Assembly: GCA_002269645.1 (NCBI GenBank)
Contig: NIVC01001338.1
Location: 62,001 to 126,000, forward strand
DNA length: 64,000 nucleotides
Source of the DNA: Macrostomum lignano
Lineage: Eukaryota
Direction of reading: 5' to 3'
Under the pieces are notes generated by a model. That model made no database searches and had not been told where the DNA came from. It was given only the letters and a program-made list of their open reading frames with translations. This document shows, in pieces, positions 13,451 to 64,000 of the stretch (positions within the stretch are counted from its first letter, which is position 1; every line of letters starts with the position of its first letter). The position numbers were made by a program, and so were the translations under genes.

Positions 13451-14929
13451 GTATGTCTGTCTGGATACATATCCCAATCAATCGCCCCGAAACCGTCTCC
13501 AACCCGTACCCCACTCACTACAGTAGCCATCATCATCGCTAGAATCGTCTCCAACACCGCTAGCCTTCTCATCGCCAAGACAGCCAACAGAGGAATCTCG
13601 GCGAGCGAAAGCGTGCCCGAACAGATCGAACACGAGGCCTTTATCGCCTGTGAAGCGGGCGGTGCAGCCCAGGTAGGCCAGCGGACAGACTGTCTCAGCC
13701 GCGAGGGTGTCGCTGCCGGACAAGTTGGGATACAGGCGGAGGTGCTGCGCTGCGTGCCAAGAGAATTCGTCGCGACGAACAACCTGTGCGGCAGAGAGCG
13801 GAGGAGATTAGAATAACCGCATTACTAATGGTTACCTTGAAAAGATCTTTTGATAAACTTTATAAAACACATCAACTAAAGATAATAAAAGGATTGACTT
13901 AGTAACAAAGTACAGAATCTTGCAGATTCTTGAGTACAGACACCTGTAAGATACTTGAGTACAGACACCTGTAAGATACTAGAGTACAGACACCTGTAAG
14001 ATACTTGAGTACAGACACCTGTAAGATACTAAAGTACAGACACCTGTAAGATACTTGAGTACAGACACCTGTAAGATACTAGAGTACAGACCCCTGTAAG
14101 ATACTTGAGTACAGACACCTGTAAGATACTAGAGTACAGACCCCTGTAAGATACTTAAGGAGACAGAACGGAACCCGCAGCTCACCTGAGAGCATACCCG
14201 AGCACCGCGCGGACGCCAATCGTGGGCCCTCGGACAGCCGTCGCCAGGATTAACAAACGCCAAGTGATGATTGACAAGCTGCGGCAGCGGAGGCTGGTGA
14301 TGATGATGATTTGGCGACTCGGCAAGGCAGCTCAGAATTCGAGCGGACAGGCCGCTGCTTGGCAGTCGATGAGGCTGCTCGGCTGATTTCTCCCCAGCCT
14401 CTTCTTTATCATCATCACGATCGCCGAGTCCTTGACTACGGTAGCCTAGCAACTGGTCTAGCGGCTCACTGCCAGCCCGATGACCTTCTCCATAATTGTT
14501 GTTATTAGCAACGGACTTGGCAGGCTTACTGTTACTGTAATTATTATTACTAGACGCCGGCCGACGCTCTTTAAGCATCAGCGACAGGCAGAGGGCGCTG
14601 TCGAAATTCGATCGACAAAATCCGTCAACATCCGGACAGGCGACGCTCATGGATGACGTCACGAACTCCGGGAACAGCATCAGCGGGCACTGGACAATGG
14701 AGGCCGGACAGACAGACAGGTGACTGGCCAACTGCTGACGAGGCAATCGCCTGTCGCAACCGTAAGCAACATTGATGCAGGGGACCAGCTGCCTGGGACA
14801 AATCAACAGGTGATCCGGCCGTTTGCAGGCGTGGAAACAGGCACTGCAGTCGCAGTGAATCATGTCGCAGCCGAGGTCGCAGCTGCGCCTGTGACAGCGG
14901 CAGCAATGATTGGCGCAGATGTTGTCCAT
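12350..14929 (-). CDS. FBXO30/FBXO40-like F-box protein with an N-terminal TRAF-type zinc finger (~486 aa)
   Basis: Exons 14929-14186, 13783-13519, 12801-12350 (phases 0 and 1 compatible). N-terminal HCCRC..CD..C.C.A.FHACK..DH.LICP...VPCINVAYGC...HL.VCPASIV; CSQVVRRDEFSWH...CPLAYLGC; F-box LMTLPDELIDRILSYLDSHALLCLRSTCRAMR; C-terminal MSKHLASCEFN. Same order of motifs as in FBXO30/40. Confidence 0.88.
12830..13460. repeat. (TCTG)n microsatellite in intron 2 of the F-box gene
   Basis: Seen directly. Confidence 0.97.
13930..14158. repeat. 25-bp minisatellite (GAGTACAGACACCTGTAAGATACTT) in intron 1 of the F-box gene
   Basis: Seen directly. Confidence 0.95.
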
Positions 14930-17205: not shown

Positions 17206-18492
<1,287 letters not shown>

Positions 18493-25500: not shown

Positions 25501-26034
25501 ACTCTAACGGCTTAGGACTCAGAGTTGGGAGACTACCTAAGCAGCAGCAACAATGGGACGGAATTCTAAAACAAGCGGCTGCAGACAGTGTAATGAGCGA
25601 TGCCGGGGCGGTGTGCCTATTAAAGGTATGGATTTTACTGCAGCTTATTAATAATTCAAGTCGATCCCTGCATCCCTAGGCTCAATTGTTGCAATAAGAC
25701 AGGGTTTTTGACAATTTATTTTTTTGACGTTTTATACACAGGCTGGAGGGGCTGATACTACACGTGTGTAGTATTACATGTAGCTAAGCACTAGCATTAG
25801 CAATTTTGTAATTGATTGCAACTTGTATGTAGAACCCTGTGCAAGCTTACATGTACCTCAGAAGAATGCCGCCTAACTAGATATGAATACCTGTATCGGC
25901 TGACCTTTAATTGAGACATGTACATCACGAAAGCATGTACATCATGCAGACGGAAGTGATGAAGTGAATTACCTTATTTAGTCTGACCTTATTTAAGTAT
26001 GAAGCTAACTTTAGTTCCTTACTGAGTCTTACAT

Positions 26035-29000
26035 GCAGCTTACTGAGCCAATTAAATTTAGCTTACTGAGCTAACTACATGTAGCTTACTGAGCTAACTA
26101 CATGTAGCTTACTGAGCTAACTACATGTAGCTTACTGAGCTAACTACATGTAGCTTACTGAGCCAATTACATGTAGCTTACTGAGCTAACTACATGTAGC
26201 TTACTGAGCTAACTACATGTAGCTTACTGAGACAATTACATGTAGCTTACTGAGCTAACTACATGTAGCTTACTGAGCCAATTAAATGTAGCTTACTGAG
26301 CTAACTACATGTAGCTTACTGAGCTAACTACATGTAGCTTACTGAGCTAACTACATGTAGCTTACTGAGACAATTACATGTAGCTTACTGAGCTAACTAC
26401 ATGTAGCTTACTGAGCCAATTACATGTAGCTTACTGAGCCAATTACATGTAGCTTACTGAGCCAATTACATGTAGCTTACTGAGCCAATTACATGTAGTT
26501 TACTGAGCCAATTACATGTAGCTTACTGAGCCAATTACATGTAGCTTACTGAGACAATTACATGAAGCTTACTGAGCCAATTACATGTAGCTTACTGAGC
26601 CAATTACATGTAGCTTACTGAGCCAATTACATGTAGCTTACTGAGCTAACTACATGTAGCTTACTGAGCCAATTACATGTAGCTTACTGAGCTAACTACA
26701 TGTAGCTTACTGAGACAATTACATGTAGCTTACTGAGCCAATTACAGGTAGTTTTCTTCGGCAATTACATGTAGCTTACTGAGCCAATTACATGTAGCTT
26801 ACTGAGCTAACTACATGTAGCTTACTGAGCCAATTACATGTAGCTTACTGAGCCAATTACATGTAGCTTACTGAGCCAATTACATGTAGCTTACTGAGCC
26901 AATTACATGTAGCTTACTGAGCCAATTACATGTAGCTTACTGAGCTAACTACATGTAGCTTACTGAGACAATTACATGTAGCTTACTGAGCTAACTACAT
27001 GTAGCTTACTGAGACAATTACATGTAGCTTACTGAGCCAATTACATGTAGCTTACTGAGACAATTACATGTAGCTTACTGAGCTAACTACATGTAGCTTA
27101 CTGAGCCAATTACATGTAGCTTACTGAGCCAATTACATGTAGCTTACTGAGCCAATTACATGTAGCTTACTGAGCCAATTACATGTAGCTTACTGAGCCA
27201 ATTACATGTAGCTTACTGAGCCAATTACATGTAGCTTACTGAGACAATTACATGTAGCTTACTGAGCCAATTACATGTAGCTTACTGAGCTAACTACATG
27301 TAGCTTACTGAGACAATTACATGTAGCTTACTGAGCCAATTACATGTAGCTTACTGAGCCAATTACATGTAGCTTACTGAGCCAATTACATGTAGCTTAC
27401 TGAGCTAACTACATGTAGCTTACTGAGCCAATTACATGTACTTACTGAGCCAATTACATGTAGCTTACTGAGCCAATTACATGTAGCTTACTGAGCCAAT
27501 TACATGTAGCTTACTGAGCCAATTACATGTAGCTTACTGAGCCAATTACATGTAGCTTACTGAGCCAATTACATGTAGCTTACTGAGCCAATTACATGTA
27601 GCTTACTGAGCCAATTACATGTAGCTTACTGAGCCAATTACATGTACTTACTGAGCCAATTACATGTAGCTTACTGAGCCAATTACATGTAGCTTACTGA
27701 GCCAATTACATGTAGCTTACTGAGCCAATTACATGTAGCTTACTGAGCCAATTACATGTAGCTTACTGAGCCAATTACATGTAGCTTACTGGGCTAACTA
27801 CATGTAGCTTACTGAGACAATTACATGTAGCTTACTGAGCTAACTACATGTAGCTTACTGAGCTAACTACATGTAGCTTACTGAGCCAATTACATGTAGC
27901 TTACTGAGCTAACTACATGTAGCTTACTGAGCCAATTACATGTAGCTTACTGAGCCAATTACATGTAGCTTACTGAGCCAATTACATGTAGCTTACTGAG
28001 CCAATTACATGTAGCTTACTGAGCCAATTACATGTAGCTTACTGAGCTAACTACATGTAGCTTACTGAGACAATTACATGTAGCTTACTGAGCTAACTAC
28101 ATGTAGCTTACTGAGACAATTACATGTAGCTTACTGAGCTAATTACATGTAGCTTACTGAGCTAATTACATGTAGCTTACTGAGCCAATTACATGTAGCT
28201 TACTGAGCCAATTACATGTAGCTTACTGAGCCAATTACAGGTAGTTTTCTTCGGCAATTACATGTAGCTTACTGAGCCAATTACATGTAGCTTACTGAGC
28301 CAATTACATGTAGCTTACTGAGCCAATTACATGTAGCTTACTGAGCCAATTACATGTAGCTTACTGAGCCAATTACATGTAGCTTACTGAGCTAACTACA
28401 TGTAGCTTACTGAGCCAATTACATGTAGCTTACTGAGCCAATTACATGTAGCTTACTGAGCCAATTACATGTAGCTTACTGAGCCAATTACATGTAGCTT
28501 ACTGAGCCAATTACATGTAGCTTACTGAGCTAACTACATGTAGCTTACTGAGCCAATTACATGTAGCTTACTGAGCTAACTACATGTAGCTTACTGAGAC
28601 AATTACATGTAGCTTACTGAGCTAACTACATGTAGCTTACTGAGCTAACTACATGTAGCTTACTGAGCTAACTACATGTAGCTTACTGAGCTAACTACAT
28701 GTAGCTTACTGAGCTAACTACATGTAGCTTACTGAGCTAACTACATGTAGCTTACTGAGCCAATTACATGTAGCTTACTGAGCCAATTACATGTAGCTTA
28801 CTGAGCCAATTACATGTAGCTTACTGAGCCAATTACATGTAGCTTACTGAGCCAATTACATGTAGCTTACTGAGCCAATTACATGTAGCTTACTGAGCCA
28901 ATTACATGTAGCTTACTGAGCCAATTACATGCAGCTTACTGAGCCAATTACATGTAGCTTACTGAGACAATTACATGTAGCTTACTGAGCCAATTACATG

Positions 29001-32000
29001 TAGCTTACTGAGCCAATTACATGTAGCTTACTGAGACAATTACATGTAGCTTACTGAGCCAATTACATGTAGCTTACTGAGACAATTACATGTAGCTTAC
29101 TGAGCCAATTACATGTAGCTTACTGAGCCAATTACATGTAGCTTACTGAGCTAACTACATGTAGCTTACTGAGCCAATTACATGTAGCTTACTGAGCTAA
29201 CTACATGTAGCTTACTGAGACAATTACATGTAGCTTACTGAGCTAACTACATGTAGCTTACTGAGCTAACTACATGTAGCTTACTGAGCTAACTACATGT
29301 AGCTTACTGAGCTAACTACATGTAGCTTACTGAGCTAACTACATGTAGCTTACTGAGCCAATTACATGTAGCTTACTGAGCCAATTACATGTAGCTTACT
29401 GAGCCAATTACATGTAGCTTACTGAGCCAATTACATGTAGCTTACTGAGCCAATTACATGTAGCTTACTGAGCCAATTACATGTACTTACTGAGCCAATT
29501 ACATGTAGCTTACTGAGCCAATTACATGTAGCTTACTGAGCCAATTACATGTAGCTTACTGAGCCAATTACATGTACTTACTGAGCCAATTACATGTAGC
29601 TTACTGAGCCAATTACATGTAGCTTACTGAGCCAATTACATGTAGCTTACTGAGCCAATTACATGTACTTACTGAGCCAATTACATGTAGCTTACTGAGC
29701 CAATTACATGTAGCTTACTGAGCCAATTACATGTAGCTTACTGAGCCAATTACATGTAGCTTACTGAGCCAATTACATGTAGCTTACTGAGCCAATTACA
29801 TGTAGCTTACTGAGCCAATTACATGTAGCTTACTGAGCCAATTACATGTAGCTTACTGAGCCAATTACATGTAGCTTACTGAGCCAATTACAGGTAGTTT
29901 TCTTCGGCAATTACATGTAGCTTACTGAGCCAATTACATGTAGCTTACTGAGCCAATTACATGTAGCTTACTGAGCCAATTACATGTACTTACTGAGCTA
30001 ATTACATGTAGCTTACTGAGCTAATTACATGTAGCTTACTGAGCCAATTACATGTAGCTTACTGAGCCAATTACATGTAGCTTACTGAGCCAATTACAGG
30101 TAGTTTTCTTCGGCAATTACATGTAGCTTACTGAGCCAATTACATGTAGCTTACTGAGCCAATTACATGTAGCTTACTGAGCCAATTACATGTAGCTTAC
30201 TGAGCCAATTACATGTAGCTTACTGAGCCAATTACATGTAGCTTACTGAGCTAACTACATGTAGCTTACTGAGCCAATTACATGTAGCTTACTGAGCCAA
30301 TTACATGTAGCTTACTGAGCCAATTACATGTAGCTTACTGAGCCAATTACATGTAGCTTACTGAGCCAATTACATGTAGCTTACTGAGCTAACTACATGT
30401 AGCTTACTGAGCCAATTACATGTAGCTTACTGAGCTAACTACATGTAGCTTACTGAGACAATTACATGTAGCTTACTGAGCTAACTACATGTAGCTTACT
30501 GAGCTAACTACATGTAGCTTACTGAGCTAACTACATGTAGCTTACTGAGCTAACTACATGTAGCTTACTGAGCTAACTACATGTAGCTTACTGAGCTAAC
30601 TACATGTAGCTTACTGAGCCAATTACATGTAGCTTACTGAGCCAATTACATGTAGCTTACTGAGCCAATTACATGTAGCTTACTGAGCCAATTACATGTA
30701 GCTTACTGAGCAATTACATGTAGCTTACTGAGCCAATTACATGTAGCTTACTGAGCTAACTACATGTAGCTTACTGAGACAATTACATGTAGCTTACTGA
30801 GCCAATTACATGTAGCTTACTGAGCCAATTACATGTAGCTTACTGAGCCAATTACATGTAGCTTACTGAGCCAATTACATGTAGCTTACTGAGCCAATTA
30901 CATGTAGCTTACTGAGCCAATTACATGTACTTACTGAGCCAATTACATGTAGCTTACTGAGCCAATTACATGTAGCTTACTGAGCCAATTACATGTAGCT
31001 TACTGAGCCAATTACATGTAGCTTACTGAGCCAATTACATGTAGCTTACTGAGCCAATTACATGTAGCTTACTGAGCCAATTACATGTAGCTTACTGAGC
31101 CAATTACATGTAGCTTACTGAGCCAATTACATGTAGCTTACTGAGCCAATTACATGTAGCTTACTGAGCCAATTACATGTAGCTTACTGAGCCAATTACA
31201 TGTAGCTTACTGAGCCAATTACATGTAGCTTACTGAGCCAATTACATGTAGCTTACTGAGCCAATTACATGTAGCTTACTGAGCCAATTACATGTAGCTT
31301 ACTGAGCCAATTACATGTAGCTTACTGAGCCAATTACATGTAGCTTACTGAGCCAATTACATGTAGCTTACTGAGCCAATTACATGTAGCTTACTGAGAC
31401 AATTACATGTAGCTTACTGAGCCAATTACATGTAGCTTACTGAGCCAATTACATGTAGCTTACTGAGACAATTACATGTAGCTTACTGAGCCAATTACAT
31501 GTAGCTTACTGAGACAATTACATGTAGCTTACTGAGCCAATTACATGTAGCTTACTGAGCCAATTACATGTAGCTTACTGAGCTAACTACATGTAGCTTA
31601 CTGAGCCAATTACATGTAGCTTACTGAGCTAACTACATGTAGCTTACTGAGCAATTACATGTAGCTTACTGAGCTAACTACATGTAGCTTACTGAGCTAA
31701 CTACATGTAGCTTACTGAGCTAACTACATGTAGCTTACTGAGCTAACTACATGTAGCTTACTGAGCTAACTACATGTAGCTTACTGAGCTAACTACATGT
31801 AGCTTACTGAGCCAATTACATGTAGCTTACTGAGCCAATTACATGTAGCTTACTGAGCCAATTACATGTAGCTTACTGAGCCAATTACATGTAGCTTACT
31901 GAGCCAATTACATGTAGCTTACTGAGCCAATTACATGTAGCTTACTGAGCCAATTACATGTAGCTTACTGAGCCAATTACATGTAGCTTACTGAGCCAAT

Positions 32001-34455
32001 TACATGTAGCTTACTGAGCCAATTACATGTAGCTTACTGAGCCAATTACATGTAGCTTACTGAGCCAATTACATGTAGCTTACTGAGCCAATTACATGTA
32101 GCTTACTGAGCCAATTACATGTAGCTTACTGAGCCAATTACATGTAGCTTACTGAGCCAATTACATGTAGCTTACTGAGCCAATTACATGTAGCTTACTG
32201 AGCCAATTACATGTAGCTTACTGAGCCAATTACATGTAGCTTACTGAGCCAATTACATGTAGCTTACTGAGCCAATTACATGTAGCTTACTGAGCCAATT
32301 ACATGTAGCTTACTGAGCCAATTACATGTAGCTTACTGAGCCAATTACAGTAGTTTTCTTCGGCAATTACATGTAGCTTACTGAGCCAATTACATGTAGC
32401 TTACTGAGCCAATTACATGTAGCTTACTGAGCCAATTACATGTAGCTTACTGAGCTAATTACATGTAGCTTACTGAGCTAATTACATGTAGCTTACTGAG
32501 CCAATTACATGTAGCTTACTGAGCCAATTACATGTAGCTTACTGAGCCAATTACATGTAGCTTACTGAGCCAATTACATGTAGCTTACTGAGCCAATTAC
32601 ATGTAGCTTACTGAGCCAATTACATGTAGCTTACTGAGCCAATTACATGTAGCTTACTGAGCCAATTACATGTAGCTTACTGAGCCAATTACATGTAGCT
32701 TACTGAGCTAATACATGTAGCTTACTGAGCCAATTACATGTAGCTTACTGAGCCAATTACATGTAGCTTACTGAGCCAATTACATGTAGCTTACTGAGCC
32801 AATTACATGTAGCTTACTGAGCCAATTACATGTAGCTTACTGAGCTAACTACATGTAGCTTACTGAGCCAATTACATGTAGCTTACTGAGCTAACTACAT
32901 GTAGCTTACTGAGCTAATTACATGTAGCTTACTGAGCTAACTACATGTAGCTTACTGAGCTAACTACATGTAGCTTACTGAGCTAACTACATGTAGCTTA
33001 CTGAGCTAACTACATGTAGCTTACTGAGCTAACTACATGTAGCTTACTGAGCCAATTACATGTAGCTTACTGAGCCAATTACATGTAGCTTACTGAGCCA
33101 ATTACATGTAGCTTACTGAGCCAATTACATGTAGCTTACTGAGCCAATTACATGTAGCTTACTGAGCCAATTACATGTAGCTTACTGAGCCAATTACATG
33201 TAGCTTACTGAGCCAATTACATGTAGCTTACTGAGCCAATTACATGTAGCTTACTGAGCCAATTACATGTAGCTTACTGAGCCAATTACATGTAGCTTAC
33301 TGAGCCAATTACATGTAGCTTACTGAGCCAATTACATGTAGCTTACTGAGCCAATTACATGTAGCTTACTGAGCTAACTACATGTAGCTTACTGAGCTAA
33401 CTACATGTAGCTTACTGAGCCAATTACATGTAGCTTACTGAGCCAATTACATGTAGCTTACTGAGCCAATTACAGGTAGTTTTCTTCGGCAATTACATGT
33501 AGCTTACTGAGCCAATTACATGTAGCTTACTGAGCCAATTACATGTACTTACTGAGCCAATTACATGTAGCTTACTGAGCCAATTACATGTAGCTTACTG
33601 AGCCAATTACATGTAGCTTACTGAGCCAATTACATGTAGCTTACTGAGCCAATTACATGTAGCTTACTGAGCCAATTACATGTAGCTTACTGAGCCAATT
33701 ACATGTAGCTTACTGAGCCAATTACAGGTAGTTTTCTTCGGCAATTACATGTAGCTTACTGAGCCAATTACATGTAGCTTACTGAGCCAATTACATGTAG
33801 CTTACTGAGCCAATTACATGTAGCTTACTGAGCCAATTACATGTAGCTTACTGAGCCAATTACATGTAGCTTACTGAGCTAACTACATGTAGCTTACTGA
33901 GCCAATTACATGTAGCTTACTGAGCTAACTACATGTAGCTTACTGAGACAATTACATGTAGCTTACTGAGCTAACTACATGTAGCTTACTGAGCTAACTA
34001 CATGTAGCTTACTGAGCCAATTACATGTAGCTTACTGAGCCAATTACATGTAGCTTACTGAGCCAATTACAGGTAGTTTTCTTCGGCAATTACATGTAGC
34101 TTACTGAGCCAATTACATGTAGCTTAATGAGCCAATTACATGTAGCTTACTGAGCCAATTACATGTAGCTTACTGAGCCAATTACATGTAGCTTACTGAG
34201 CCAATTACATGTAGCTTACTGAGCCAATTACATGTAGCTTACTGAGCCAATTACATGTAGCTTACTGAGCCAATTACATGTAGCTTACTGAGCTAACTAC
34301 ATGTAGCTTACTCAGCTAATTACATGTAGCTTACTGAGCCAATTACATGTAGCTTACTGAGCCAATTACATGTAGCTTACTGAGCCAATTACATGTAGCT
34401 TACTGAGCCAATTACATGTAGCTTACTGAGCCAATTACATGTAGCTTACTGAGCT
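26035..34455. repeat. 23-bp satellite array (GAGCCAATTACATGTAGCTTACT), about 366 units
   Basis: Head-to-tail units without spacers; variants GAGCTAACT, GAGACAATT and GAGCTAATT; palindromic core TACATGTA. Confidence 0.99.
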
Positions 34456-34765: not shown

Positions 34766-35151
34766 TTAACAGCTGTAGCAGGGACAACGTTCGTCCACAT
34801 AATTGCTGTAATACTTTTGTTCGCTGACGCAGTACCTGCGGTAGCGACCGCCTTGATGGATGCAGTGGATTGTACAGATGATTTCCCAGGTGTTTCTAGG
34901 GTCTGAAAAAAACACAAATAGTTTACTAGGCATTGGTTAGAAAGATTTAGAAAGAATTTTGAAACATTTGCATCTTTAGTCCGACTCTAAAAACGGTTCA
35001 ACTTACACACGACATTGCTGGGCAGGCGTCTCTTGTTGGCCAGGTGGTCGCTAGCGGCCGGTTCAATCAGCGGATGGTTCCTGCTGATAGGCGAGGCACT
35101 AGAAGCAGCAAAGCCCAACAGACAGACGGTACCAAGCAGCAGCAGATTCAT
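34766..35151 (-). CDS. Small secreted Cys-rich defensin-like peptide precursor (93 aa)
   Basis: Exon 35151-35007 (145 nt, donor GTAAGT), 104-bp intron, exon 34902-34766 (TTTTTTCAG acceptor). Translation: MNLLLLGTVCLLGFAASSASPISRNHPLIEPAASDHLANKRRLPSNVVYPRNTWEIICTIHCIHQGGRYRRYCVSEQKYYSNYVDERCPCYSC*. Confidence 0.8.
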
Positions 35152-42835: not shown

Positions 42836-43883
42836 ATATTGAATCTCTTGTTGCTATTATATCTATCTATTCTCTATCTTTAATTTGCAACTTAATATAA
42901 TAGGCCTAGCAATTGTTATATTAATTAAGTATATATTTTAATCATGTATAAATACTATGCAATTATTGAAATAATACAAAATATTATATTATATATAAAA
43001 ATATAACTGCAATAATATATTTAAAACAAATAATCTATATAAATTTTTTAAATTTTCTTTTTAAATTTTATTCCAGGTAGGTTTAGTAATAATATTACCT
43101 AACTAAAATAAGTTTAGCCTAATATGAAGCTACCCTGGTACCAATATTTTTAGTTTAATAATTCAAGTAACAATTAATCAATTTAATTATAAGCTACAAA
43201 AAAACTTGGAATATATCTAGGCCTATAGGCCTAAGCAAGCAACAAAGTGAACAAAGTATTGTGTACTTGGCCTAGGCTAGGTTTTATTTGCTTTATTTAA
43301 TAGATAAATATCTGCAATAAAAGCTTAAGAGAATGCTTTTTGTTTGGTTAGGGCCTAATCCGATTTTATTATAGTAGTACCTATCTAAGATTTGTAGATC
43401 TAGGCCAGATACTATACCCAATTACAATATTTATCATTACTGATAACTGATAAGATATAGGCCCCCTATAGAAATCAATGTTAGGCACCATTAATGAAAA
43501 TCTAAACTTCCATTAATGGCAAAAGTGTTGACTATAGTCTTGACTGTTTAACCAGTTTTAATGAATTTTTTCTATTTCTCTAAATTAGTACACTCAATGG
43601 CAGAGTCAATGGTTTAATACAATGCCAGACTTTTCCGGACGCCCCTCGTATATTAAAATTTGTTAATGTCATTAATCTTCCTATTCTAATCATTTATAGT
43701 ATAATTAAAAATTCACAATTGTAAAATGTAATGGGAAAAATTCTCACCTACTATATTTTTATAGTTGTGTTGTGGCCACAAGAGCAGTTGCTATCTGTAA
43801 GCATATGCAGTGAAAATTTCTGCAGAATAATCATCCATACATGTTTGCAGAAAATTGCATATAACCAACCAATAAGCAAATTA

Positions 43884-46800
43884 ATGGCTCTGCACCGACT
43901 TAGCTCAGCTTGCAATAGAATGTTTCTATCAGCATCAGTAGTGCAGACTGCCAGTGGACTACGCAGCCTGTCATCCGCAGGCGGACTGGCTGACAAATTC
44001 ACCAAGGCGCAGTCAGCTCTGCAGCGGCTCACTGAGGATCCCGGCAATGCTGCCAAGCTGAAGATCTACAGCCTGTATAAGCAGGCCACGGAGGGCAAGT
44101 GCACCAAGCCGAAGCCGGGATTCACCGATTTCGTCGGCCGAGCCAAATGGGACGCTTGGAGCGGCCTTGGGGACATGACCAAGGATCAGGCTATGCAGCA
44201 GTACATTGACCTGGTGGAGTCCATGGGCGGCAAGCTGGATGCTCCCGATACTACTGCCGATACTACTAATCCCGCCGATTCTAATACTGCGTCTGCTGAT
44301 TATAAGGTACAAGCTTATTGATTGTGAAATCTTTATTAAAATAACTGCATTTTTTGTTTTGCTGAAGATTTTTTGTCTGAAGATTTTCTAATGACATTTC
44401 TCTGCAAGATTAGCTGTCATGCGCTCACTGATAGGCAGCTTGCTCTGTAGCTGGCGCCCCCTCTGTAGCTGGCGCCCCCTCTGTAGCTGGCGCCCCCTCT
44501 GTAGTTGGCGCCCAACAACAACAACAAACAACAAAATACGCTGTCATGATGGTAAAAGTCAGCGTCACAGGGCGCGCTTCATGGCTTGGGCGCGAACAAA
44601 GGCCGCGCCACCGGCAGTGTCCGGGGCGCCGGCGTCAGCCAGCAGACAGTCGACATAACGCCGAGTTCGCGCTTGACCTCGCCGGTAGGGTGCCTGCAGC
44701 GTGAGCAGCAGCACCTCCTGCACCGGCTGTGGGCAGTACGACTCGGCGCGGATGAGATGGCCTGCGAGCTGGAGTCGCCGACGGCGCAGTAGATCACTTG
44801 GACGTGGCAGGCCAGCGCGGCGATAGAGTGCCGCGTTGGTGACTCGCTCGACGCCGATGTTGAAGGCGGCGCGCAGCAGACCAGCGTGCGCCGCATCGAC
44901 TTGCTGTTCGAGTGAGTCCGTCAGCGTCCAGGTCTCGGCGTTGTACAGCAGGACGGTCTCGATTACCGCCTGGAACAGCGCCGCCCTCTGGCGGTCCGGT
45001 AGGGCCTCGGACTGCAGGACTGCCCTCACAGAACGAAAGGCAGCCCAGGCAAGCCCGCGGCGGCGTCGCAGGTCCTCGCGAGCGTCTGGAACCAGACCGC
45101 CGAGGTAGACGAACTGCTGACATCGCGGGAGTTCGGTCGCCTGCCCGTCAGCGCCTCGGCAAAATATTGCAGCCTCGATGTCGTCCGGCACGCAGAGCAC
45201 AACGGTCTTCTGCGTGTTGACCACCAGGCCGACACTCGCCGCAACGGCAACCAGCCTGTCCAGCTGCCGTTGGGCGCCCTCGACGGTCGAGGACAGCAGG
45301 GCGAGGTCGTCGGCGTAGCCGACCAGTTGGCGCCCCCTCTGTAGTTGGCGCCCCCTCTGTAGCTGGCGCCCCCTCTGTAGCTGGCGCCCCTCTGTAGCTG
45401 GCGCCCCCTCTGTAGCTGGCGCCCCCTCTGTAGCTGGTGCCCCCTCTGTAGCTGGCGCCCCTTCTGTAGCTGGCGCCCCTTCTGTAGCTGGCGCCCCCTC
45501 TGTAGCTGGTGCCCCCTCTGTAGCTGGCGCCCCTTCTGTAGCTGGCGCCCCCTCTGTAGCTGGTGCCCCCTCTGTAGCTGGCGCCCCCTCTGTAGCTGTA
45601 GCTGGCCCCCTCTGTAGCTGGTGCCCCTTCTGTAGCTGGCGCCCCCTCTGTAGCTGGCGGCCCCTCTGTAGCTGGTGCCCCTTCTGTAGATGGCGCCCCC
45701 TCTGTAGCTGGCGCCTTCTCTGTAGCTGGCGCCCCTTCTGTAGCTGGTGCCCCCTCTGTAGCTGGCGCCCCTCTGTAGCTGGCGCCCCCTCTGTAGCTGG
45801 CGCCCCCTCTGTAGCTGGCGCCCCCTCTGTAGCTGGCGCCCCCTCTGTAGCTGGCGCCCCCTCTGTAGCTGGCGCCCCCTCTGTAGCTGGCGGCCCCTCT
45901 GTAGCTGGCGCCCCCTCTGTAGCTGGCGCCCCCTCTGTAGCTGGCGGCCCCTCTGTAGCTGGCGCCCCCTCTGTAGCTGGCGGCCCCTCTGTAGCTGGCG
46001 CCCCCTCTGTAGCTGGCGCCCCCTCTGTAGCTGGCGGCCCCTCTGTAGCTGGCGCCCCCTCTGTAGCTGGCGGCCCCTCTGTAGCTGGCGCCCCCTCTGT
46101 AGCTGGCGGCCCCTCTGTAGCTGGTGCCCCCTGTGTAGCTGGTGCCCCTTTAGTTGGCGCTCCTGGATATAGTTGGATTAAGTTTTAACTACTTTAACTA
46201 CTTCTAGCTACTAGTTGTAAAAATAAATTTAAGAACTATAAAAAGGGTCCGAGCGAGGTCTGTTTTTACATACGACATAATTATGTTTGCATGCACTCAA
46301 GGTTCAAATATCCGAATCTCAGTTACTGCAGCAATTCTCATTCGCATTGGTTTAAAAGACAATAAATGAAACGTTGCATTTTTAGCACTAAAAGTTTGTT
46401 TTGTCTTTATTTTTTTGGCGTTAATTAAAACCAAGATCTAACATTAACAACATCTAAGGTCAATTGAGAGGATTCCAATATTTACAATATATAAAGATTG
46501 TTAAATTTTCATGTTGCTACTGTAAGTAGACGATTGCGCAGAAACTTTATTATGTATTTTTATTTACTTTCAGGAAGCTCTAGTATCCATCTCGCCTAGC
46601 GGGGTGCTTTGGTTCACCCTGAATCGGCCAGCCAAGAAGAATGCCATCTCAACCGATCTATACGCTGAATGGTCCAAAGCGATGGAGCAGGCCGCCGCTG
46701 ACGACAAGGTCAAGGCTATGGTCATCACCGGTGCCGGGGAGTATTTCAGCTCCGGCAACGATTTGTCCAGCTTCACCAATTTAAAACCCGGCGTCACCAT

Positions 46801-46981
46801 GGAGCAGATGGCCGCCGATGGTAACGCCATTTTGCGTCGCTTTGTTGCGGCATTTATCGACTTCCCCAAGCCGTTGATTGCGCTGGTTAATGGGCCCGCG
46901 GTGGGCATCTCTGTGTCCACGCTGGGCCTGTACGATCAGGTGAGTCTTTTGAGAACTGGGCGCATTTGTTGGAAATAAGTG

Positions 46982-47045
<64 letters not shown>

Positions 47046-47985
47046 CAGATAGATAGACAGATAGATAGATGCAGACAGGTAGGTAGATAGTTAAGCTTTA
47101 ACAATAAAGTCAATTAAATTCCTACTCCCTAATCGCAGGTGTTCGCCTCCGACTCAGCCACATTCCACATGCCATTCTCCTCGCTGGGCCAAACTCCCGA
47201 AGGCTGCTCCTCCTACACCCTGCCCCGCATCATGGGCCTGCCGGCTGCTGCCTCCCTGGTCATGTTCAACCGGAAGATCTCCGCCCAGGAGGCGCTGTCC
47301 TGCGGCCTCGTTAGCCGGGTCTTCCCGGCTGCCTCCTTCGCCGCCGAGGCCGGCGCCGCAGTTGAAGAGATTGCCGCCCTGCCCAGACAGGTGAGCGCCG
47401 GTCATCTGCTAATTTTTGCTTAACCGATTTGTTCACTGGATGCACTGATCTCATTAATTCAATTTTCTGCTGCGGAGAGCTAGCTAGCTTAAAATAGTTT
47501 TCAGATTTTTAGAAGCCTACTGTTGTAACTTTTCTCTCCCTTCCTCTCCTATCTCCCTCTCTCCCTCTCTCCCCTATCTCCCTCTCTCCCTTCCTCTCCT
47601 ATCTCCCTCTCTCCCTTCTCTCTTATCTCCCTCTCTCCCTTTCTCTCTTATCTCCGTCTCTCCCTTCTCTCTTATCTCCCTCTCTCCCTTTCTCTCTTAT
47701 CTCCGTCTCTCCCTTTCTCTCTTATCTCCCTCTGTCCCTTTCTCTCTTATCTCCCTCTCTCCCTTTCTCTCTTATCTCCCTCTCCTTTCGTCTCCCATCT
47801 GCCTCTCTCCCTCTTCTATCTCTTTGCAGACGCTAATTTACGCCAAGCAGCTTTTGCGAGAGCCAATCAGAGCGGAGCTGCACGCCACCAACGAACGGGA
47901 GTGCAACCGGCTGCAGGAGCGCTGGATATCCGAGGACTGCTTCAATGCTGTGGCGAAATTTTTCTCGCGAAAGTCTAAGCTTTGA
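43884..47985 (+). CDS. ECI2: Enoyl-CoA delta isomerase 2 (ACBP + crotonase domains), 398 aa, PTS1 SKL
   Basis: Exons 43884-44306, 46574-46939, 47139-47390, 47830-47985 (all phase 0). [34 protein letters not shown]; crotonase [52 protein letters not shown]; ends FFSRKSKL*. Confidence 0.97.
44435..46150. repeat. 18-bp minisatellite (CTCTGTAGCTGGCGCCCC) interrupted by the LINE
   Basis: About 4 units left of the LINE and about 45 units right of it. Confidence 0.95.
44514..45324 (-). mobile_element. 5'-truncated RTE-clade LINE inserted in ECI2 intron 1
   Basis: Open RT C-terminus [58 protein letters not shown]..; (TTG)n-like tail at 44514-44534; 11-bp TSD AGTTGGCGCCC at 44503-44513 and 45325-45335. 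Confidence 0.92.
46978..47095. repeat. (GATA)n microsatellite in ECI2 intron 2
   Basis: Seen directly. Confidence 0.97.
47530..47820. repeat. Pyrimidine-rich repeat (TCTCTTATCTCCCTCTCTCCCT) in ECI2 intron 3
   Basis: Seen directly. Confidence 0.9.
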
Positions 47986-48412: not shown

Positions 48413-50703
48413 CTATGAAATATGATTCCAATTTATGTTGTCCAGTTCCATCTGAAGTGCCAACATTGTTGGACTGGTGTGGTTCGCTAGCTGGTTAAAT
48501 AGCTGCTCAGCGCAATGTCGCACTGACTCAGAAACACCAATGTTGCTGCTGTTGCCGCAGCTGCGACTCGGCGAGCAATCTGGCAACAGGCTAATAATGA
48601 GCTTCTGCTCAGCAACCCACGCTTCAATGTCAGTCTGCGACCATTTATCACCGGCTGCAGTTTTCTGGCACCAGAGTCGGATTGAATCGATGCAACTAAG
48701 CGTCGAATCACTGTGTTGCACTGCCTGACTAGCCGCTCTGATGCTGACTGCCTTGAGTACAGCGTTCGTCACCAGATCGAATGAGCTTGAGTCTATTTGG
48801 CATTTACTAGTATCCGTCTTGACAGCTTTATCGAGCACCCTGTAAGCCATCAACGTGGCCAACTGCAATGACGAGTCAAGAAACGGCGCATAGAAGTGCA
48901 CAGGAAGTTGAAATTCTTTTCCGCTAGATCTACGAGTAGATGGAAAAGTCGTTGCTAAAGCCGATTTGGTGAACAGTTGCAGAGCCTCGCGATCTTCTGT
49001 GCCACCCCGAGCAGCCATGACCGTCAGCATCGCCCTCGTGTGCCTGATAGTCGACAGAAGATCCAGTAAAAAATCTGCTTGGTCGTTTAAACTTAGGCCG
49101 TCGTAGAGCTTGGCTAGAAGAGTTTCTGAAGGTACACCGCTGGCAGTCTTCAGGTTGATTCCCGCTGGCAGACGGTGCTCGAAAGCCCGACTCGCAACTG
49201 CCGGCATCGCAAATCGGACAGCTCGAGCGCAGGATTCGACCTGCGTCAGTCGGCCCTTGTCGCTGCTGCCCAGCAAAAAGCTTCTCAATCGTCCCGCGCC
49301 CTCAATAAATGCTAGACCGATCAACGTGTCGGGGTCTTGGGCTGTCAGCAGTCTCAGACGTTGCCGCATAACTTCCAGTCGTCCGCGTACGCTAATAAAT
49401 CCGAAACGACCGTCCACGCTTACTACAGTTCCGGTCCTGCTTCCGCTTGGTTGGGACGCTTTGACCGCTGCTGGCAGTTGGTCTAGTTGGAAAGCTTTCC
49501 AGCCGCGTTCACCGCTCGGAAATAAGTCTACCAGGTCTGACAGCAGCACAGGTTTTGTGACGTCTGCATAGTGCGGCGCGTTTTTGGTCAAATTAAAAAT
49601 ACGAGCGTACATATTAATGATGCTCCTATAATTATTGCTGTTTTCCCACTTACTGCCTTCATCATCTCGCCGTTCTAATTGATTGAGCTGCAGTCTCAGA
49701 CTGACAATTCGATCGGCTATGACTCCTGGCAGGCCGCGATCGACTCGTTCAAACGCTGATGCTGCTTCTATTCGATACGCCCAAGCGCTTGCCATTAAAA
49801 AACAAAGACAGCAAATGTAAATGCGTGTATCGCCAGGCAGATTATAAAGTTAAACGCGACATTAACGAAATCCGAAATTTCTTACTTATCATCTACATCA
49901 CTAGCATAAGTCGACATCTCAGACGCTTGCAGTCTTAGCGGCACAGTTATGTAATCGGCAGCTGGGTAAGTTGCGAGTTCGACTCCCGCCGGTAGGCCCA
50001 ATCCCGCCAGGTAGCCTAACAGTCGCTCGGACGCTTCACCATTCCTAGGCTTAGTGAATCGAGTGCTCAGCAGGCCGGTGTGCCTTCCTAGTAGGCGAGC
50101 CAGAGCCGGCTCCACCGCGATTGCCTCTCGTCCGAACAGGTCTCTGGCGGGGCTGGACCTCATGCATGACAGCGCCAGACTTGAGGCGGCTCGCATCCAA
50201 CTCTTGGCGCTAATTGAAGGCTCCGGTCTAACCAGCGCTTCAATTAGCGCGCTAGCGGCTTGCTGTTGAACCAAGCGCAACCGATCAACGCTGCCGTCTT
50301 TAAATCCGGTGCCTTCAACGCTCCACTGTAGGCTAGCGACTCGCTGGAAACTGCGACACACTTGCAGCGGCTCGTACTGGCTGCAGTTGTCAGCCCCAGC
50401 GAATCCCTTGAATGATTTTTGATCGACTACTTGCAAGGCACTTCTATTAGAGATCTCTGACTCCTTGTGACAGTCGATCCTGCCGATGTAAAATGCTGAG
50501 AGAGCCGCGGCTGCAGCCGACAGGAGCACCGTCAGAATGGCTCCCAGTAGCAGCAGACAGGCTGTCAGTTTTGAACGCTTACGACGAACTGGGAGTCGTT
50601 GAATATCGTCATCGGATTGACTTAATCTAATCGAGACGTTGTTATCCTCATCCTGATTTGCTTCGTTTCTGGTGTGTAACGTTGGCGTCCTGAAAATTGA
50701 CAT
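48413..50703 (-). CDS. Divergent neprilysin/M13-like type II membrane protein lacking HExxH (probably 2 exons, 730 aa)
   Basis: The 273-aa and 460-aa ORFs join through a 98-bp intron (donor AA|GTAAGA at 49885, AAG acceptor at 49788). Cytoplasmic tail, RRKR, TM helix, then M13-like landmarks in order: VCRSFQRVASLQW, ALSCMRSS, ESCARAVRFAMPAVA, LPVHFYAPFL, LMAYRVLD (HExxH position), SKC, RLWCQ, PDCSPSRSC. Confidence 0.6.
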
Positions 50704-51580: not shown

Positions 51581-53921
51581 TGTTGATAGCCGGGGGGGGG
51601 CAGAGCTGCTCCGTTCAAACGCGTCTGAATCTCGCTCTTAAGTCCTAGGCTCGATTCCAAGCACCCCAAAAGCAGTTAATGGGGCTCATGCATAAAAATG
51701 GTTTGTCCTTCTCAACCCTTAAGCACTGTACGAGTACAACCTCTGTGAGTTCGTGTTTGCGTACGTTTCCGTGTGCACACGTGTGCTCAGGGGTCAGCGG
51801 ACCGATGTTTGCATGGCAGCCTTGACTAGCGGTAGTGTCATAGATAAAGGAGTCCTTGCTTCGAGAAGACAGTCCATGGACAGCGCAAGTTGTCAAACTA
51901 GATCGATGAATTTATAAGCCAGAAAGTTCCTAACAGAAATCCAATCGATATTTATTCAACTCAATTTCATAGTGCACTTGATTCTGTGAAAACTCCATTA
52001 ATAAGAAGAATCGAAGGCATATTTCTCTCTCGCTAAAAAAATTACCTAGTGTGTAAAATTATTTTTTTGCTGTTCAATGCAACAGTTAAACTACTTAAAT
52101 TTAGATTATAGATACACTTGTTCCTGTAACACTCATCTACTTATATGAGTAGCGTGGTTAACATTTTGTTGTTCTGCTTTGGTGCTATGCTCCTACAGTA
52201 CCGGTACATGTATGTATGCAGTATAGTATATAGTTAGTTGGCTTTTAGCCACCCAGTTGCAGCATCTTTCGGTCAAACAGCTTACAAACAGTGGTAATAA
52301 TTTACAAATTTTATTACCTGCCATACACTTTGGACAAGCCTGTAGAGCAATGCCGAAAATCAAGAATTCGTGTCCATATCGCGTTGTCAGCTGCACCTGA
52401 TGTACAGTATGTACTCGGATGTACAAACTTACACAAGATGTACAGTGGCCCTCTGACTTTCTTTCCGTCAGGAAGTCTACTAGAAATCATAATGTGCTGT
52501 GTCTGGGTTGGCTCAAATGAGCAAAGATCGCTACGACAAGCTCTAGGCCTATTGCCGGTCTAGGCACTTAATTAAGAAATTAATTTCGCCACAGGTGTAT
52601 AGCCGAACTCGGGTACTTTTCACACAATGGCTTCAATTCGAAGAGAAACATTGTCGATCGGGAAAGTCACTCGCACGACAGCGTGTAGGAGGTAACAAGG
52701 GAAAGCTCGTGCTCATTTACATTTTAAGATATCAAGCTTTAGACTGTTGAGCCATCGGTTTGGAGGTTTAATCAAAATATTTTTAAGACTCGAGTGCATG
52801 CACTCAAATCAACAGGTACACAGCCCATGCACTGATTACTTTGCCGGGCTCATTTGGAGGCTTTTGAATCGAAAAAGCACAAAACTTCAAACTAAACCGC
52901 GGGTGAAAAATTAATTAAAGGCTGTTTTTCTACACCGAATGCATTTTTTTGTTTACTATTTCCGTAATGCTTCTTGCTGTTGCCCAAAAAAGGAAGATAA
53001 ATTTCGTGCTGAATATCTAATATCTCCTTCAGCACTATTTTATAATTTGTTTTTATGTGCACGACGCTTCAGTTTACACCAGTATCTAATATTAGGTATG
53101 GAATTTTCTACTGTCAAAATTAGGGTCAGAGTAAACCCGATCTGCGGCAATGGCAAACCTGCTGCCTCCAAAAGCTTTCCAAGAAACGAAGTTTCCCGTA
53201 GTTACTTGAGTAGTCATTGGTCATGACTTTCTTCAGATTGAGCTTTATTGCGTGTGAGCATGTCAATGCATGCAGAAAATATTTTGGTAATTCCTGATTT
53301 AATCCAGCCTACGCTCGTACCGAATATGGAAAATCGCGAGCTCAACGAGGCCCCAATTCTGGAGTAAGCTCAATTTTTGACTGTCAACTGCCCTGGGGGT
53401 TTTAAAAATTACTTGACTCGAATTGTTTAATGTTTCCAATGCTATCTATACGACGTAAATGCACTTCTGCAGTATGCTGCGTGCGTTTTACTCGTAGATT
53501 TGAAAGACATTCATTTTAGAATACATCGTAGTATGTTGCATCAAAACACGGACGTTGTCAAGAATTTTTTTATCGTTAAGGGGGCGCCAGCACCAGGGGC
53601 TTTAGCACCAAGGGCGCCAGCACCAGGGTCACCAGCACCGGGGTCACCAGCACCGCATCCTGGCTACGACACTGCATCAGAGCTGCCTGAATTAATATAA
53701 ATGTAGGAGAAAGCTAATGTTGATCTGGATTCTTTTTTTATTGCAGCACTGTTTCATAGAAATTTGATGCAAGAACAATAAGAGCAATTTAATTCAATTA
53801 ATCAAAAAAAGCAATTCTAATTTCCTTGGATGACTCTGGTCCAATTCTCGCGAATTCAAGCAATCAGTGTCTCATCTGGCTGGCCTCATCCGGATTGGCC
53901 CGCAACTGATGTGGACTTCAT

Positions 53922-53929
53922 TATAAATA
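53922..53929 (+). promoter_or_regulatory. Candidate TATA box of the second defensin-like gene
   Basis: TATAAATA 120 bp upstream of the ATG; CCAAT/ATTGG at about 53841 and 53894. Confidence 0.4.
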
Positions 53930-54041
53930 CTCGCATAGGTGTGACTCTGCGTCCGTACTGCATCTGACGTACTCAAAGCAAAACCTTGGATTTTTCAGTA
54001 ATCTTTTTCCTGTCTCAATCAGTTCTGATACTAATTAGCCA

Positions 54042-54542
54042 ATGCATTCGTCCACTACAATACTGGCAGCTTGCCTTGTGCTGGTGCTAATCAGCGTTGA
54101 CTATCAGGGTGGCGGAGTTAGCGCCACACCTTTGGCTAATAAACCTGGCGAGATGCAAACTCGACAAGTCAACAAAAGAGTTTTCTGTAAGTAATAAAAC
54201 CAACTGGTTTCAGATTTTTATTTTGCCAGGCAGTCGATCGATAAGCTAAGCCAACAACCCCACGCTGCGTGCTAAATGTACATTTAGCTGACAATGTACA
54301 GATTGTAGGGTAGGCAGAAATTCTCTGCTATCTCACCCACCTCCCCACTGCGCGCTGAATGTACATTGAATGTACACTCGGAACTTTAAATGCCAATTTC
54401 TACCTACTTTCCAGATTTTCACACGGTTTTTCGCTACTGCACCCGCCGTTGTCGTCAGCACTTTGGCGTCACCGCCGGCTGCGTTGGATACCTGAACATG
54501 CCTTTAGGCACATGCGACTGCGTCTGTTCCAACTATCCTTGA
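54042..54542 (+). CDS. Small secreted Cys-rich defensin-like peptide precursor (90 aa)
   Basis: Exon 54042-54186 (145 nt, donor GTAAGT), 228-bp intron, exon 54415-54542 (TTTCCAG acceptor). Translation: MHSSTTILAACLVLVLISVDYQGGGVSATPLANKPGEMQTRQVNKRVFYFHTVFRYCTRRCRQHFGVTAGCVGYLNMPLGTCDCVCSNYP*. Confidence 0.82.
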
Positions 54543-63720: not shown

Positions 63721-64000
63721 AGTGCTCTAAATAACGAGACTCCTGTTTTCTCACTCGACCGGAATTTGTTGTTTAATCTGCTTAACTAATCTCTGCGTTT
63801 TAGTTTTCAGTTTCACTGTCAATTTTAGGTTTTATTCTAAGCGCAAGTGTAATTGAATTTTTTATTCATATTAGTCAGGCATATTGCGTACAGCATTAGT
63901 AAAGGTAAAGGTAAATAGACTGCTTGTAACTAGTTTTTCCTTCATGTGGATTGGCTTTAACGAAGCCTTTTGTATTTCAAGTAATGCTGAATTCGCTGGA

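Follow-up and report, generated by a model that had tools for sequence, protein, structure and literature searches.

Do flatworms make defensins with the cysteine-stabilised alpha-beta (CSab) scaffold? CSab defensins are known from sponges to arthropods. In 2023, Irvine et al. searched 33 flatworm species, including both assemblies of Macrostomum lignano, with BLAST and hidden Markov models and concluded that flatworms are devoid of big defensins, CSab peptides and myticalins; the absence of CSab peptides they called surprising (PMC10414684). The question is raised again by a small gene of M. lignano. It occupies positions 54042-54542 on the forward strand of a stretch of 64,000 nucleotides, here called the window, which corresponds to about 62-126 kb of contig NIVC01001338.1 in assembly GCA_002269645.1 (Mlig_3_7). 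The gene has two exons, and its spliced product of 90 amino acids has the make-up of a precursor that would release a peptide with six cysteines. This peptide falls outside the classical six-cysteine defensins; by its motifs and its predicted topology it is CSab-like. What it may be good for, and how far the likeness goes, is discussed in the following.

The Gene and Its Annotation

Exon 1 codes for the signal peptide and the propeptide, and its last 2 1/3 codons open the mature peptide (coordinates are compiled in Table 1). Base 54186 is followed by a consensus donor (T/GTAAGT), and a pyrimidine-rich acceptor (CTACCTACTTTCCAG) closes the intron at 54414. The spliced product is letter for letter identical with GenBank entry PAA69243.1, a "hypothetical protein BOX15_Mlig034330g1" of Macrostomum lignano. 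The gene models of Mlig_3_7 were built from RNA evidence only, by means of StringTie and TACO applied to RNA-seq data and a de novo transcriptome; gene boundaries were taken from trans-splicing and poly(A) reads, and transcripts that are at least 95% identical share a name prefix (PMC5730564). Because this annotation is derived from RNA, the Mlig034330g1 model and its intron provide indirect evidence of expression. Mlig034330g1 is a real, intact, RNA-annotated gene that had been catalogued before. An earlier reading of the letters, here called the original prediction, had seen an intact and expressible gene at this place. It was right: reading frame and splice sites are intact, and the product equals an RNA-derived entry.

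A cysteine-pattern scan detected the arrangement CxxxC...CxCxC elsewhere in the window only in simple repeats, and tblastn of the peptide of each exon against the window revealed no paralogue by sequence.

Precursor and Mature Peptide

The original prediction had proposed a prepro-peptide with a mature part of 44 residues. Such a precursor is borne out by several findings. Residues 6-19 form a hydrophobic core; SignalP 4.1 is positive, with cleavage between A28 and T29, for g2 and g3, two sister copies of the gene, and likewise positive for the paralogue Mlig002610g1 (PMC10414684, S5); and the KR pair is invariant in the paralogues. Cleavage after K45-R46 would leave exactly 44 amino acids, comprising the motifs CTRRCR, GTC and CDCVC. 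A signal peptide and a conserved dibasic site in front of the mature domain are the attributes of a secreted precursor of the prohormone type, the cleavages being predicted ones.

The mature peptide has the framework C-X3-C-X9-C-X10-C-X-C-X-C, with the cysteines at positions 11, 15, 25, 36, 38 and 40. It contains four Arg, no Lys and one Asp, which amounts to a charge of about +2.9 at pH 7. The cationic CTRRCR segment, which had been placed in a helix from the letters, and the C-terminal CDCVC are indeed there, and AlphaFold2 puts CTRRC into a helix and CDCVC into a strand.

Predicted Fold and Disulfide Pairing

AlphaFold2 models were built on an alignment of four mature-domain sequences. For the peptide of the window, the model reached a mean predicted local distance difference test (pLDDT) of 81.7 and comprises a helix from residue 2 to 19 and two strands (25-30 and 35-40). 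With the paralogue Mlig002610 as target, the pLDDT was 72.5, and the helix (2-17) and the strands (23-28 and 33-38) appeared in the same topology and register. In both models the CxxxC motif is located in the helix, the first two cysteines of CxCxC are located in the last strand, and the third and the last cysteine of the peptide are placed at opposite ends of a regular hairpin. Structure prediction had been named from the outset as a way to check the original prediction, and it yielded a helix with CxxxC and a hairpin with CxC.

Given the register assigned by DSSP, only one wiring would make geometric sense, and it is the probable one: C11-C36 and C15-C38, which is the pairing of a cysteine-stabilised helix, plus C25-C40 as a staple of the hairpin. 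The spacings of CxxxC and CxC are invariant in the family, and the placement in helix and last strand is common to the two models; the pairing as such is predicted. In the ten-cysteine reference array of CSab peptides, it is the bond C2-C6 that completes the canonical fold (Tarr 2016, PMC5116183). Translated into this array, the peptide has C3, C4, a mid cysteine (C5/C6), C8, C9 and a C10-like cysteine. C2 is missing.

Genome Copies and Paralogues

The two sister copies, g2 and g3, reside on other contigs and are syntenic with the window copy: the upstream neighbour is an ACBP/enoyl-CoA hydratase-family gene in all three cases. Downstream of g2 and g3 an EF-hand gene is found 7.7-8.7 kb from the peptide gene; downstream of the window copy, no gene is called within 10 kb. 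Exons, intron and flanks of both sister copies are equally close to the window copy, at about 96-98% identity, and three near-identical copies fit the known recent polyploidy of M. lignano. With intron and exons conserved to the same degree, the comparison of g1, g2 and g3 is uninformative with respect to selection. What distinguishes the window copy from g2 and g3 are two amino acids, both in the propeptide (M38/I and R41/H), a deletion of 28 bp some 200 nt before the ATG (53841-53846; alignment columns 107-134) and an 11-bp insertion (GCAAAACCTTG) in the putative 5' untranslated region (UTR).

More distant relatives are scarce. A word-indexed search of 5.8 billion proteins returned the Mlig034330 cluster only. 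An exhaustive HMMER search, run over 1.84 billion cluster representatives, brought up two more true relatives, and these are again M. lignano proteins: Mlig020375 (96 aa, E 4e-5) and Mlig002610 (102 aa, E 5e-4). Two other HMMER matches, a 901-aa repeat protein (P0004) and a 2300-aa bacterial repeat protein (P0007), were dismissed as low-complexity or repeat artefacts, and a further profile search yielded no additional family members. The three paralogue groups share 35-48% identity, and each comprises about three near-identical copies. Judged by these sequences, they make up a small multigene family that has so far been seen only in M. lignano.

The groups have retained a common scheme. Invariant are the KR pair, a His shortly behind it, the six cysteines, FG after CxxxC and G-Y-x-N after the third cysteine. 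In each group the gene is split by just one intron, in phase 1 and 0-4 residues past KR, and the mature peptides of all paralogues are cationic (+2.9 to +5). In 36 ungapped core codons, the proportion of synonymous differences (pS) is 0.51-0.71, which is near saturation, and that of non-synonymous ones (pN) is 0.34-0.47; with 36 codons only, these are crude estimates. It follows from the nearly saturated synonymous sites and the retained scaffold that duplication took place long ago and that the scaffold is being maintained, with free change at the positions between the cysteines. As a side aspect, a protein-kinase gene lies 1.6-6 kb downstream of the Mlig020375 and Mlig002610 loci on the opposite strand, which suggests that these loci are duplicated segments themselves.

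Possible Roles: Host Defence or Other Functions

How could such a peptide be made and work? The precursor would enter the secretory pathway, where signal peptidase would cut first and an enzyme of the furin/prohormone-convertase type would then cleave after KR. In the mature peptide, two disulfides from CxxxC to CxC would pin the helix to the last beta-strand. A third one, probably C25-C40, would staple the ends of the hairpin and thus replace the canonical bond between an N-terminal cysteine and the first strand. The outcome would be a scaffold of the CSab (defensin-like) type in which the third bond is rewired. On this scaffold, we are slightly inclined to believe, rests a secreted host-defence, i.e., antimicrobial, effector of a marine flatworm that is exposed to bacteria. 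As to the mode of killing, binding to membranes or to cell-wall precursors would be a guess by analogy only. In favour of an antimicrobial role one may cite the positive votes of 6/11 and 8/11 predictors of antimicrobial peptides (AMPs), the defensin names in UniRef and the cationic charge.

Quite a number of observations weigh against a defensin-like effector and have to be faced together. No cysteine is present between KR and CxxxC in any of the paralogue groups; the canonical N-terminal cysteine of defensins, and with it the disulfide, is absent, a point that the original prediction had passed over. Pfam was scanned with precursor, mature peptide and paralogues; it disclosed no defensin or toxin family, and no defensin family even at E values up to 10. 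Sequence searches of the PDB, with single sequences and with profiles, found no defensin. The family was also compared by hhalign with each of five solved CSab antimicrobial peptides (MGD-1, mytilin B, ASABF, insect defensin A and plectasin): the probability was at most 4%, and the matches were no better than those of composition-matched shuffles; a profile-profile comparison with an alignment of the five gave 1%. The five references had been verified in the PDB, MGD-1, plectasin and ASABF being exact residue by residue, insect defensin A (79 bits) and mytilin B (60 bits) being full-length table matches. Foldseek searches of the PDB with both models yielded nothing significant and no match with E<2, a method that has little power at 44 residues; ASABF (2D56) came up only at rank 15, with an E value of 5 and a TM score of 0.42 over 40 columns. 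Only four aligned sequences stand behind the AlphaFold2 models. The only positive family label comes from outside: the UniRef name of the sister copies and of both paralogue groups is "Invertebrate defensins family profile domain-containing", which derives from the PROSITE profile INVERT_DEFENSINS; the window's own copy is just named "Uncharacterized protein". Such PROSITE-derived names, "defensin" included, are fragile for peptides that short; a look-alike neighbour, labelled ShKT without support from its framework or from Pfam, is a warning. Finally, full texts and supplements on M. lignano contained no expression or function entry for Mlig034330, Mlig020375 or Mlig002610, apart from a catalogue of AMP-like peptides; no site of expression, induction or activity was found in this literature.

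The PDB searches also had their chance matches. These were a zinc-ribbon segment of ribosomal protein L24, the helix of a scorpion beta-toxin (weak, with an E value of 3.3) and, for the propeptide of the neighbour gene, a phage hyaluronidase.

The same gene, processing and scaffold could equally serve a secreted ligand of another kind, for signalling, for reproduction (in the seminal fluid) or with toxin-like action, which would address a receptor or an ion channel. We consider this rather unlikely, and yet there are points in its favour. Many CSab and other small disulfide-rich peptides act on receptors or channels, and a prepro-KR build is just as typical of precursors of neuropeptide-like or toxin-like molecules. 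Six-cysteine CSab sequences are not sortable into toxins and antimicrobials by sequence alone (PMC5116183). A net charge of only about +3 and just 6/11 positive AMP predictors for the sister copies would comply with such a ligand, and so would the variable positions, which evolve fast between the paralogues as they do in reproductive or toxin genes, and the label ShKT that UniProt has attached to the neighbouring look-alike. A Lys dyad is the feature of toxins that block the pore of K+ channels; no Lys is conserved in the family and this peptide has none, which argues against such a role. Moreover, this copy has no C-terminal amidation signal, and the gene was not found among the entries listed in reproduction-related supplementary tables. 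M. lignano feeds by grazing on diatoms and, as far as is known, has no venom, which also counts against a ligand of this kind. It is also improbable that the peptide adopts a different disulfide-rich fold, be it ShKT-like or a novel knot, and that the CSab likeness is a coincidence of cysteine spacing over-interpreted by AlphaFold2. Such a view could draw on the lack of any sequence or Foldseek match to CSab proteins, the alignment depth of four, the moderate pLDDT of 72.5 for the paralogue, the missing canonical third disulfide and the predicted helix of about 18 residues, since the helix of a typical CSab peptide is shorter. It has to cope, however, with the family-invariant spacings of CxxxC and CxC and with their helix and strand placement, which is the same, in the same register, in both models. 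As to a ShKT-like fold, the six-cysteine framework typical of ShKT ends with C-x3-C-x2-C; the one discussed here begins with CxxxC and ends with CxCxC, and Pfam ShK matches neither the peptide nor the paralogues nor the neighbour.

That the locus is without any function, i.e., a chance pair of open reading frames or a decaying copy, is hardly credible. The 28-bp upstream deletion and the 11-bp indel in the putative 5' UTR relative to the sister copies could be taken as signs of decay, and selection cannot be read from the three copies, which have diverged too little and have intron and exons equally conserved. Nevertheless, the product matches the RNA-derived model exactly with reading frame and splice sites intact, and the old paralogues have kept KR, six cysteines and intron phase despite near-saturated synonymous sites.

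Significance and Previous Record

A host-defence peptide on a rewired CSab scaffold would have consequences beyond the single gene. Tentatively, with somewhat less than even confidence, we regard the Mlig034330 family, possibly together with Mlig033545 and Mlig029134 (see below), as a genuine, highly divergent CSab defensin lineage of the Platyhelminthes that has lost the N-terminal disulfide and uses a staple at the hairpin ends instead. If true, this would overturn the published conclusion that flatworms are without CSab peptides (PMC10414684). The CSab superfamily would gain a new disulfide topology and, with it, a case of disulfide rewiring in nature; a phylogenetic gap in the occurrence of the scaffold would be closed, and M. 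lignano would offer innate-immune effectors that can be tested. This species is, as far as we know, the one flatworm with routine transgenesis. In short, this locus, its paralogues and the similarly built neighbour suggest that at least one early-branching flatworm may possess the CSab scaffold, in a version both too divergent and too rewired for homology searches. If the peptides are not antimicrobial, they still are an uncharacterised, lineage-restricted family of secreted peptides.

The gene was in the databases beforehand, and the sister copies and one paralogue are already contained in one list of candidates. This is the S5 machine-learning catalogue of "AMP-like peptides", which lists Mlig034330g2 and g3 with 6/11 AMP predictors positive, in the dropped group "Same genome", and Mlig002610g1 with 8/11 predictors positive as "Ungrouped", which was dropped likewise; cysteine-rich candidates were neither tested nor synthesised by these authors (PMC10414684). 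In the available part of S5, the window's own copy (g1) was not found among the entries listed. The sister copies and the paralogue were thus listed, yet they were neither grouped as one family nor recognised as a CSab-like framework. The family is already catalogued but uninterpreted, and the advance lies in the interpretation.

The Second Peptide Gene

Upstream of the gene under study, at a distance of 19 kb, a looser scan for cysteine density detected a second gene for a secreted peptide. Its product of 93 amino acids equals PAA69241.1 (BOX15_Mlig033545g1), and it is probably the one that the original prediction had listed as "Peptide 1". It likewise has a signal peptide, a pro-part, KR and a GTAAGT donor; its framework is C-X3-C-X10-C-X14-C-X-C-X2-C and starts with C-T-x-x-C like that of the gene under study. 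It has a paralogue group of its own, Mlig029134, with 52% identity. The GenBank protein accessions of the Mlig033545 and Mlig034330 copies differ by exactly two in all three genome copies, and an ACBP/enoyl-CoA hydratase-family gene is found between both peptide genes in the window. Mlig033545 and Mlig034330 appear to be a conserved pair that flanks one intervening gene in all three copies.

Are the two peptide genes related? An hhalign comparison of both window peptides gave an E value of 0.0016; when re-run with -M first the result was lower, with a score of 18.6 and an E value of 0.0095. In a control on the latter score, in which the signal peptide was kept and the rest was column-shuffled, 25 of 120 shuffles reached it. 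Homology between the two is therefore no more than plausible. The C-x-C-x-x-C ending of the second gene is the same as in mollusc defensins and ASABF, which supports the view that, in both genes, the last cysteine is C10-like and the partner of the mid one. UniRef labels the alleles of the second gene "ShKT domain-containing"; this label is supported neither by its framework nor by a match to Pfam ShK.

An 8.4-kb satellite occupies 26018-34454 of the window. It consists of about 367 copies of a 23-bp unit (CTTACTGAGCCAATTACATGTAG; 95% matches) and ends some 300 bp away from the Peptide 1 stop codon.

Flanking Motifs and Features of the Window

The original prediction had credited the gene with a TATA-containing promoter, CCAAT motifs and a downstream signal resembling ATTAAA. 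These claims fared differently. The TATA motif TATAAATA is present at a plausible position, and only this position speaks for it: with 5 occurrences found in the window against 3.2 expected it is not enriched, and its identity in the two sister copies says little, the copies being about 96-98% identical throughout. CCAAT does occur at 53841 and at 54039, where it overlaps the ATG. The upstream one, however, is not conserved between the copies; it was created at the junction of the 28-bp deletion that is specific to the window copy and is absent in g2 and g3. An ATTAAA is indeed present downstream, as a candidate poly(A) signal, and it is shared with the sister copies.

Repeats are found in and around the gene. 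The intron contains, at 54255-54367, a 30-nt direct repeat (80% identical, 83-nt spacing) with the palindromic core GCTAAATGTACATTTAGC; the motif GCTRAATGTACATT occurs three times in the same segment and nowhere else in the window, 0.06 being expected. Just past the donor, at 54208, there is a decoy resembling an acceptor (TTTCAGATTTT). A short imperfect repeat rich in Ala, Pro and Gly (units of the type GCACCAGGGG) covers 53576-53660, about 400 bp upstream of the ATG.

Table 1. Position of genes, gene parts and candidate signals in the window
Feature	Position	Strand	Remarks
Exon 1, coding part	54042..54186	+	145 nt; ATG at 54042
Signal peptide	54042-54125	+	aa 1-28; in exon 1
Propeptide	54126-54179	+	aa 29-46; exon 1; ends with K45-R46 at 54174-54179
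Intron	54187..54414	+	228 nt, phase 1, GTAAGT...TTTCCAG
Exon 2	54415..54542	+	remainder of the 44-aa mature peptide with all six Cys; TGA stop at 54540-54542
Candidate TATA box TATAAATA	53922..53929	+	113 nt upstream of the ATG
Candidate poly(A) signal ATTAAA	54589..54594	+	47 nt after the stop; kept in the sister copies
Second secreted-peptide gene	34766..35151	-	exon 1 35007-35151 (145 nt), phase-1 intron 34903-35006, exon 2 34766-34902
TRAF-like zinc-finger exon (PF15965)	14129-14929	-	
DPCD-family exon (PF14913)	17559-18155	+	
ACBP + enoyl-CoA hydratase/isomerase gene (ECI2-like)	43731-47985	+	

The remainder of the window is rich in repeats, too. Its first 26 kb contain many other mini-satellite arrays. 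A tandem array with a period of 662 bp and copies that are 100% identical extends from 59883 to the window end at 64000. Since the EF-hand gene of the two sister loci has no called counterpart within 10 kb here, the array may have arisen by insertion or expansion in the window copy alone, or as an artefact of its assembly. Between the ACBP/enoyl-CoA hydratase-family gene and the peptide gene, at 48413-50703 on the reverse strand, there are two long open reading frames of 460 and 273 aa. They have no Pfam match, are not called in the public annotation and may belong to a degenerate mobile element or to an unannotated gene.

Comparison with Known CSab Peptides

The invertebrate CSab defensins (insect defensin A/sapecin; PS51378, Defensin_2) are the obvious yardstick. 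The peptide shares with them the secreted prepro-form, the dibasic site, a cationic peptide of about 40 residues, the three disulfides and the location of CxxxC in the helix and of CxC in the last strand, disulfides and location being predicted here. Even the X9 between CxxxC and the next cysteine is that of insect defensin A. The differences are no less clear. The peptide has no cysteine before the helix, so that the defining C1-C4 bond is impossible; it has an extra cysteine directly after CxC, making CxCxC, and its hairpin spacing is X10 instead of X5-7. The GxC of the gamma-core, which classical defensins have on the strand before the CxC strand, is not seen there, as the cysteine of the first strand is preceded by A-G, R-G or A-R and lacks a spacer residue. 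It sits immediately before CxC instead (GTC, GNC), which resembles the arrangement in mytilin. The original prediction had pointed to GTC as a GxC motif. GTC is there in the mature peptide, but a GxC before CxCxC is not family-invariant, since one paralogue has RGC.

Mytilin B of Mytilus (PDB 2EEM) shares with the peptide the lophotrochozoan origin and a long beta-hairpin whose first strand starts with GY and whose second strand has G-x-C-x-C-x-C. In mytilin, GXC aligns with the position before CxC (Tarr 2016, PMC5116183). The mytilin hairpin is stapled at its base by a disulfide, and the same is predicted for the peptide. Mytilin B also gave the best local match in hhalign (GY...G.C.C.C), which was not significant, as 9 of 100 shuffles reached the observed score. 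Mytilin differs, however, by its eight cysteines, which include an N-terminal one and a C-terminal CxxC partner, and by a spacing between helix and hairpin of X4, compared to X9 here.

The nematode ASABF/ABF peptides (PDB 2D56) are CSab peptides that likewise come from "worms". Among small disulfide-rich peptides, Foldseek aligned ASABF alone with almost the entire model, a match that is not significant (E 5) and is not accompanied by sequence similarity to the peptide. The form called ASABF-6Cys-alpha keeps C3-C6, C8 and C9, whereas the flatworm family keeps C3, C4, the mid cysteine, C8, C9 and a C10-like one. ASABF-6Cys-alpha provides a precedent: it is a six-cysteine CSab peptide that does without the N-terminal cysteine and must, by necessity, pair its cysteines in a non-canonical way (PMC5116183).

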